Assembly: GCA_011109175.1 (NCBI GenBank)
Contig: RDEW01000051.1
Span: forward strand, 267,812 to 331,811
From: Dicyema japonicum
Lineage: Eukaryota; Animalia; Dicyemida
Length of the DNA stretch: 64,000 bases
Direction: 5' to 3'
Shown: positions 57,354-57,672 of the stretch, in pieces
How positions within the stretch are numbered: the stretch's first letter is position 1
Layout: the number at the start of each line of letters is the position of its first letter
Made by a program: the position numbers and the translations under genes
The notes under the pieces: model-generated
Database searches by the model: none
What the model saw: the letters and a program-made list of their open reading frames with translations, nothing else
What the model was told of the DNA's origin: nothing

Positions 57354-57672
57354 CCGCGTGGCGCCATGTGGTGCTGCCTGGTTAATTGGTTGAAGTTTTC
57401 TGCTTGCTTTCTGTTCCTCCTCTCTTTTCCTAATAGAGTGGCGTCATGTGATCCACCTATCTAAATGACGCCCAGTGCCAGGCCGGCATGAAAAAGGATC
57501 ATTTGCTCTTCCCCACTCCACTGGAGGGGTTTCCACTACTGTATGTAATGGAAGTCTTACCTTTTATTTTGATTCCGGATGGACTCTGTTTATGTAGAAG
57601 TGGAAACTGGATACACTTAATTAGTTGTTTACTTTAACTTCTTTTTCGGTGTATCCGGGGTTAATAAATAAA
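57354..57672 (+). mobile_element. SINE family A1, full length
   Basis: Head CCGCGTGGCGCCATGTGG, core 57440-57501, tail TCGGTGTATCCGGGGTTAATAAATAAAT. Confidence 0.92.

Follow-up and report, generated by a model that had tools for sequence, protein, structure and literature searches.

Comparison of the copies of a short repeat core in the genome of Dicyema japonicum indicates that this core is a real RNA structure maintained by selection, a double pseudoknot with the shape of the HDV ribozyme. We consider it fairly probable that the fold derives from the 5′ end of a LINE and that SINE-like elements have kept it as a non-cutting module, which would aid the use of their RNA as a template or slow its decay. 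The copy studied lies at 57440-57501 (+) of the window, that is, of the whole 64-kb stretch of DNA that was analysed.

The core and its host element

The core at 57440 is of SINE-A2 type and is recognized by the covariance model of the core at 79.8 bits. The 62-nt sequence given for it in the preliminary description was confirmed, and the helices claimed there (P1, P2 and P4, together with P3) can be drawn as stated. It occupies element positions 87-148 of a SINE-A copy of 320 nt (57354-57673, +). SINE-A is made of a hairpin head of about 40-45 nt, a CT-rich linker, the core, a CCCC..GGGG hairpin, a 3′ stem-loop, AATAAA and a (TAAA)n tail. At least 1940 genomic candidates were found in the 67,542,437 bases (377 contigs) searched, the best ones being 93-95% identical. 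Target-site duplications (TSDs) of 8-17 bp flank many copies and, together with AATAAA and the (TAAA)n tail, identify SINE-A as a LINE-dependent retroposon, dispersed, at high copy number and with a LINE-type 3′ tail. A tRNA search returned none and an Rfam search of its head gave no match, so that a classical Pol III head derived from tRNA, 5S or 7SL was not recognized; two T4 runs lie inside the element. 'SINE-like' is therefore a safer term than classical Pol III SINE, and the T4 runs and AATAAA suggest that transcription is by Pol II or by read-through.

A near-identical locus with the same flanks as window 57300-57700 is found on another scaffold (L003, G000:C112:502593-502911). It has the same TSD and the same three core substitutions as the 57440 copy, and its downstream flank matches for about 20 nt beyond the tail before diverging. 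This suggests that the two are a duplication or an uncollapsed haplotype, hence non-independent insertions. At the 5′ junctions of SINE-A copies (L002-L030), 5-20 extra bases often stand between the upstream TSD and the consensus start. In some cases, as in L030 and L022, these extras are pieces of the head itself, pointing to a switch of template or to slippage as reverse transcription ends.

With model R1, the covariance model of the core, 13 copies were detected in the window at E ≤ 0.0015 (Table 1). The preliminary description had counted about 13 SINE-A copies; the count stands, but not all of them are SINE-A. One is of LINE type, and the others are spread over four or more repeat families: A, which is young (4 copies), B, C/D and several families that are old and decayed. 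A pattern search aimed at the old families returned 4 copies. Whole-element alignment and consensus BLAST revealed that the families are assembled from modules: A and D have one 40-nt hairpin head in common, one 3′ tail is common to A and E and another to C and D, and the core with the CCCC..GGGG hairpin after it is common to all. The conserved body extends over about 105 nt in the older families. The core thus has the properties of a SINE central domain, the same central part being combined with different heads and tails. A literature search for strings of the core sequence gave nothing relevant.

Several features of the surrounding DNA were recorded. Window 49105-49981 is an assembly gap of 877 N, and the long 'ORFs' listed at 49062-50108 are artefacts because they cross it. 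In the minus-strand reading, sequence resembling a SINE/LINE 3′ end (60061-60085, ..CCGGGGAGTTAATTTG..) directly precedes the LINE-type core at 60060, and in L048 a SINE tail is immediately followed by a head; the elements appear to insert head-to-tail beside one another. The host of Dicyema is an octopus, and host contamination needed filtering in the D. japonicum assembly (PMC6736024); host-to-parasite transfer or residual contamination are raised as possibilities for these repeats.

Table 1. Positions in the window of the core copies detected with model R1 and of the structural parts of the 57440 copy
Feature	Position	Strand	Remarks
SINE-A2 core	57440-57501	+	copy studied
P1	57440-57445/57467-57472	+	core copy 57440
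J1/2 AUG	57446-57448	+	core copy 57440
P2 (pseudoknot)	57449-57454/57496-57501	+	core copy 57440
P3	57455-57457/57464-57466	+	broken in core copy 57440 (ACC/AAT)
J1/4	57473-57474	+	core copy 57440
P4	57475-57479/57485-57489	+	core copy 57440; G·U closing pair
J4/2	57490-57495	+	core copy 57440
SINE-A1 core	24122-24186	-	whole element 23952-24275; point mutations break P4
SINE-A1 core	51413-51477	+	copy 51289-51567 with internal deletion
Older A-type core	61739-61803	-	whole element 61573-61904
Family B core	25666-25731	+	whole element 25576-25889; J4/2 starts with C after GGCAC
Family C core	18505-18570	+	P2 TGGATCC/GGATCCA; P4 ATCCC/GGCAT, one mismatch (family consensus ATGCC/GGCAT)
Family D core	55112-55177	-	head as SINE-A, tail as family C
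Family E core	1384-1448	-	old; about 24 genomic candidates; A-type tail; P4 ATGCC/GGCAT
LINE-type core	59991-60060	-	P1 TGCGTC/GGTGCA; P2 TGGTTC/GGACCA; P4 an 8-bp AT hairpin
Old decayed core	22006-22071	-	covariance model, 63 bits
Old decayed core	37380-37446	+	covariance model, 60.6 bits; P1 GGAGTC/GAATCC
Decayed core, 5′-truncated	54435-54491	-	covariance model, 29.9 bits
Decayed core without P4	28674-28733	-	covariance model, 27.5 bits

Pairing is maintained between lineages

Mutations acquired after insertion are neutral, so that only differences between lineages are informative. P2 was found in five complementary versions, in which three of the six pairs swap Watson-Crick type: TGATCC/GGATCA in families A and B, (T)GGATCC/GGATCC(A) in C, D and F, TGGTTC/GAACCA in LINE-1, TGGTTC/GGACCA or GAATCA in LINE-2 and CGGTTC/GAACCG in L037. 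Three changes had been singled out in the preliminary description. The version TGGATCC/GGATCCA of P2 at 18505 proved to be the consensus of its whole family (57 harvested rows, some overlapping at one place). P4 does read ATGCC/GGCAT at 1387, a state shared by the C/F family. The reading GATTC/GAATT of P2 at 55115 is true of that copy, but a 97%-identical sister (C213:5515) reads GGATTC; this is thus a single-copy change of little weight.

The other helices vary in the same manner. Position 1 of P1 is G-C in the SINEs and U-A in both LINE types, and position 5 is U-A or U·G. The U·G form, GGTGGCGCC, is common among A-type cores, where this wobble replaces the U-A of GGTGACGCC in about one third of the matches listed; it is taken to mark a further SINE-A subfamily, in which the change preserves pairing. 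P4 is read as GTGCC/GGCAC, GTGCC/GGCAT, ATGCC/GGCAT, GTGCA/TGCAC, an 8-bp AT hairpin or a 3-bp stem: its sequence is swapped wholesale, yet it remains a hairpin. The fourth pair of P3 is G-C or U·G.

We compared these changes with those in shuffled alignments. When 16 sequences were aligned with MAFFT alone, both sides had changed in 8 pairs against 4.1 in shuffles, a value reached by 13 of 500 shuffles. In a model-based alignment of 48 distinct sequences (A4), 14 of the 21 pairs were changed on both sides against 7.0 ± 1.7 in shuffles, with 31 cells against 10.8, counts that lean toward P2, P3 and P4 since these were fitted by the aligning model and P1 was left out of it. The covariation score of A4 was 0.189, compared with 0.132 in shuffles and 0.04-0.05 in slid controls, and not one of the 500 shuffles reached any of the five measures. 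Doubly changed pairs are present in P1, P2, P3 and P4 across SINE and LINE lineages, three of them in P1 although it stood outside the aligning model; the independent lineages behind this covariation are few, about 8-10. The LINE-type copies were partly found by a model that rewards P2 pairing, and the L037 copy was also matched, weakly, by a sequence-only nhmmer search (E 0.0014). The claim that pairing is kept while the sequence changes is thus borne out, covariation in P1-P4 being well above both shuffle and slid controls.

Nested folding selected P1, P3 and P4 in SINE-A, P2, P3 and P4 in the LINE-2 copy, and P2 without P3 or P4 in family C. P1 and P2 are each chosen in some lineage, which indicates that each is stable enough, and the two can coexist only as a pseudoknot.

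The fold lies at the 5′ end of a LINE

Divergent matches to the core led to LINEs (L037:5799-5866, the LINE-type copy of the window and L044:6879-6948 (-)). A search of LINE 5′ ends for the core had been proposed in the preliminary description. Using a 1.2-kb query across the L044 core, we found at least 20 genomic copies whose matches start at query positions 303-305, no more than 2 nt from where P1 begins; some of the matches are short derivatives with internal deletions. The first two bases (UU; UG in LINE-2) are part of the element in the harvested copies. Most LINE copies therefore start no more than 2 nt from P1, and the module is the 5′ terminus of a LINE family.

In the L044 LINE (6942-6740, -; = G000:C24), the J1/2 AUG (element nt 7-9) begins an open frame that takes in a 2A-like motif, GDVNPNPGP, about 60 codons further on; a second in-frame AUG directly follows P2′. 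An endonuclease-like stretch and then an RVT_1 domain lie downstream, in other frames of this decayed copy. The endonuclease-like stretch was read by eye, the ORF that carries it matching no family in Pfam, and an Atlas look-up of the reverse-transcriptase fragment returned generic RVT_1 clusters only. The LINE-1 and LINE-2 leaders have MWF...KRT in common. In the LINE-type copy of the window, which has a sister at C124:502132, the frame is open for 44 codons from the J1/2 AUG, with no long ORF behind it. Since the reading frame is open from this AUG, the LINE fold also lies within coding sequence, and part of its conservation there may be at the protein level. No ORF was found behind the core copy L037:5799-5866; an ORF with DM10 domains adjoins it (L037:6878-7615, -; a host gene of nucleoside-diphosphate-kinase-7 or EFHC type). 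The tail-2 motif at L044 2303-2334 was considered as the LINE 3′ end and rejected, as it has the opposite orientation.

The same fold is thus the 5′ end of a LINE with a 2A-like leader and RVT_1, in agreement with the earlier proposal of a LINE-derived core reused as a SINE body; to judge from these sequences, the SINE core is copied from the LINE 5′ end. The SINE-A/D head, GTGGCGCC-ATG-TGGTGC (window 57354-57400; L048:3931-4001), is similar to the 5′ half (P1-J1/2-P2) of the LINE-type core, and the head GGCGCC-ATG-TGGTGC to the first 20 nt of the LINE end. It seems that SINE-A/D opens with the same module in truncated form and continues with the CT-rich linker. The head as a second complete pseudoknot was rejected, as no P1 3′ strand follows it. 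Head and core together recall the two tandem signatures of SIDER2, and the head with its CT-rich linker recalls the CT-rich spacer of scallop LP-type SINEs.

Comparison with the HDV ribozyme signature

The order P1-P2-P3-P1′-P4-P2′ can be drawn in SINE-A, family C, LINE-1, LINE-2 and L037, so the HDV-like helix order claimed earlier holds across lineages, with covariation in each helix. J4/2 had been described as longer than usual and A-rich: it measures 6-9 nt, and 4-5 nt in canonical HDV-like ribozymes. The first pair of P1, which is G·U in HDV, is G-C or U-A in the SINE and LINE cores. Neither a P1.1 nor an L3 signature is conserved in position across the lineages compared. A 2-bp P1.1 candidate, UG/CA, can be drawn in SINE-A and other dinucleotides elsewhere, a match of 2 bp being likely by chance, and the U...G spacing of L3 fits family C only. 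The remaining sizes (P1 6 bp, J1/2 3 nt, P2 6-7 bp, P3 3-5 bp, J1/4 1-2 nt, P4 3-8 bp) fit the published HDV-like ranges, which are 6-7 bp for P1, at least 5 (about 7) bp for P2 and 3 bp for P3, with a short J1/2, a J1/4 of 0-2 nt and a variable P4 (PMC4908430, PMC3774820). The Rfam HDV, CPEB3 and drz families gave no match at gathering score in the window, and the HDV-family models none at E ≤ 10 on SINE, LINE-1 and LINE-2 copies.

At the boundary between P4 and J4/2, most lineages have a C followed by an A-rich run; J4/2 starts with C-(N)-A-A in families B, C and E and in the LINE types. SINE-A1 reads C-G-A-A, the C being free only if the closing pair of P4 opens. SINE-A2, including the copy at 57440, reads U-G-A-A-A-A-A and thus carries U in place of the putative catalytic C that is present in some lineages. 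Among the first 100 matches listed, the would-be catalytic site of SINE-A is C in about 48 and U in 29, and the U form amounts to about one third of copies. The U variant is linked to other diagnostic sites, and other CpGs are 90-100% intact; decay of a CpG was therefore rejected as the source of the polymorphism, and both variants must have been amplified.

Cleavage or not

Self-cleavage of the LINE version has, on sequence grounds, roughly even odds. A stricter reading, which we find unlikely, is that the ribozyme is active in the parent LINEs only, where it would trim read-through transcripts to their first base, and that the SINE copies are decaying relics kept by chance. The coincidence of LINE 5′ ends with P1 is what this reading predicts, J4/2 opens with C-A-G-A or C-A-A-A in the four LINE-1 copies that were harvested, and the arrangement is known in R2, L1Tc/NARTc and SIDER (PMC4035085, PMC3774820). 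However, LINE-1 has a bulge or mismatch in P1 and a J4/2 of 9 nt, and SINE lineages with different heads and tails all retain the module. These lineages also carry compensations of their own, P2 position 1 being U-A or G-C and the P4 closing pair G-C, G·U or A-U, which indicates selection on the fold within SINE master copies.

It is also unlikely that the SINE core itself is an active HDV-like ribozyme, cutting 5′ of GGCGTC and so releasing a head-less RNA or regulating SINE RNA levels. Cleavage would remove the leader, but the AGT directly upstream is retained in 273 of 294 A-type cores (93%), as expected from a per-site decay of about 5% alone. This indicates that the copied RNA was uncut at P1. 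The letters C-G-A-A of SINE-A1 are those carried by HDV and CPEB3, and most other lineages have C-(N)-A-A; the C of SINE-A1 is nevertheless drawn as part of the P4 closing pair. Helix order and sizes within the published ranges (PMC4908430, PMC3774820) and LINE elements beginning at P1 are also in line with activity. Against it stand the length of J4/2, the lack of a P1.1 or L3 signature at a conserved position, the Rfam result at E ≤ 10, and the U of SINE-A2, as a C-to-U change inactivates HDV-like ribozymes (PMC10879173). The preliminary description had allowed that the SINE core may be non-catalytic; the retained leader, the amplified U subfamily and the HDV-family searches of Rfam all agree with this, and the SINE fold most probably serves as a structural module that does not cleave.

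Conservation at the DNA level, whether as an internal promoter comparable to the Pr77 of L1Tc or as a palindrome bound by protein, the helices being an inverted-repeat by-product, appears improbable. The two P2 strands of SINE-A, TGATCC and GGATCA, are complementary and non-identical, as are those of the LINE types, so that an inverted relation is kept rather than a repeated site, even though the palindrome GGATCC occurs twice in family C. P4 changes its sequence entirely and stays a hairpin. A promoter in the middle of a SINE predicts head-less copies, and none were seen, 273 of 294 cores keeping the leader. Precedents for a promoter exist: in L1Tc, the same 77 nt are promoter and ribozyme (PMC3383444), and mollusc LP-SINEs have been proposed to use their LINE 5′ domain as a promoter (PMC4758252). 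In the LINE, the fold and a promoter function could occur side by side.

Finally, it is very improbable that the structure is a chance drawing of no biological meaning: such an arrangement (6/6/3/4 bp in HDV order) does occur about twice in each 64 kb of sequence simulated with a Markov model, the structure was derived from a consensus, which is a favourable choice, and no window copy passes a strict four-helix descriptor, at least one helix being point-mutated in each, so that the weight rests on covariation and not on the drawing, but all 500 shuffles were exceeded on all five pair-count measures, every helix has double changes, including P1 outside the aligning model, and P2 exists in five complementary versions.

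Proposed role of the fold

The reading that we favour, a LINE-derived double pseudoknot kept in SINEs as a non-cutting module, may be put as follows. The home of the fold is the first 65-70 nt of a LINE group, in which the J1/2 AUG opens the frame leading to the 2A-like peptide, the endonuclease-like stretch and the reverse-transcriptase domain. [quoted passage not shown] Families A, B, C/D, E and F have captured the module, carry it behind a head (with the CT-rich linker in family A) and join it to different LINE-type tails. In SINEs, the fold would help the LINE machinery to use the RNA as a template, either by offering proteins a platform to bind or by impeding 5′ decay.

From insertion assays based on R2, it has been concluded that the ribozyme structure as such raises template use; a C-to-A catalytic mutant was strongly inhibitory in the same assays (PMC11331408). 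The role of the fold in SINEs is inferred here by analogy with R2, a different element.

We put forward only tentatively the broader idea of a portable, non-cutting 'retrotransposition-competence' module or, alternatively, of a LINE version that is a novel catalytic form within the HDV class, its core being non-canonical. If the module is portable, LINEs would use it as a 5′ end with a start codon inside the fold, and SINEs would retain it in mid-body because the LINE or decay machinery reads the fold. It would then, for the first time, account for a SINE 'central conserved domain' in structural terms, and may explain the LINE 5′ domain of about 70 bp in LP-SINEs across animal phyla.

What is unusual is a complete fold kept by compensating changes deep within very abundant SINE-like elements (present in thousands of copies across 67.5 Mb of genome), whose copied RNA is evidently uncleaved and one of whose successful subfamilies lacks the catalytic cytosine. 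The value of the fold is thereby separated from the value of catalysis. A concrete and testable origin and role are thereby proposed for the central domain of a SINE, a kind of sequence with a function left unexplained since the 1990s.

Comparison with known systems

HDV-like ribozymes are known at the 5′ ends of LINEs and in their short derivatives (R2, L1Tc/NARTc and SIDER; PMC4035085, PMC3774820). The Dicyema module resembles them in its nested double pseudoknot at the first LINE nucleotides, in its presence in short non-autonomous elements, and in its dimensions (P1 6 bp, P2 6-7 bp, P3 3 bp, a variable P4 and a J1/4 of 1-2 nt). The 2A-like leader peptide is shared with L1Tc-type and other endonuclease-bearing LINEs (PMC4035085, PMC3774820, PMC3894237). 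In contrast to these ribozymes, the Dicyema cores show no P1.1 or L3 signature conserved in position, have a longer A-rich J4/2, start P1 with G-C or U-A and match no Rfam HDV family, and one large subfamily has U at the would-be catalytic C. Known derivatives carry the module at their 5′ terminus, whereas in the Dicyema SINEs it is set 60-90 nt into the element and follows a head which is copied in every case.

The LP-SINEs and pectinoid MESC SINEs of molluscs (Matetovici et al. 2016, PMC4758252) are likewise TSD-flanked retroposons with a LINE 5′-end domain of about 70 bp. In scallop LP-type SINEs this domain is followed by a CT-rich spacer, and LP-SINEs also have tandem-repeat tails after the polyA signal and modules shuffled between families (PMC4758252). 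Their LINE piece is the head, however, and has been read as a promoter with no RNA fold proposed (PMC4758252); in Dicyema the complete module is central and a fragment-like head stands at the 5′ end, the two systems being compared by description only.

A body domain of 60-110 nt with different heads and tails also characterizes the CORE, V, Deu, Ceph, Nin-DC, Meta and further superfamilies of SINEs. To our knowledge, neither the origin nor the function of these central domains is settled; the Dicyema domain differs in having a LINE 5′-end source and a covarying tertiary-type fold.

In flatworms, the Sm-alpha element of Schistosoma is a hammerhead SINE. A hammerhead of the Sm-alpha type was considered for Dicyema and rejected, as neither the window nor the SINE copy gave a hammerhead or twister match in Rfam. 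Twister variants occur in non-LTR elements of S. mansoni (PMC8501958). The ribozymes of the flatworm retroposons are of another class than the HDV type, and both systems place a small ribozyme-type fold in highly repeated non-autonomous elements of a parasitic spiralian. With these elements, the range of the HDV-type RNA architecture grows by a dicyemid mesozoan and by a group of LINEs whose leader is 2A-like.
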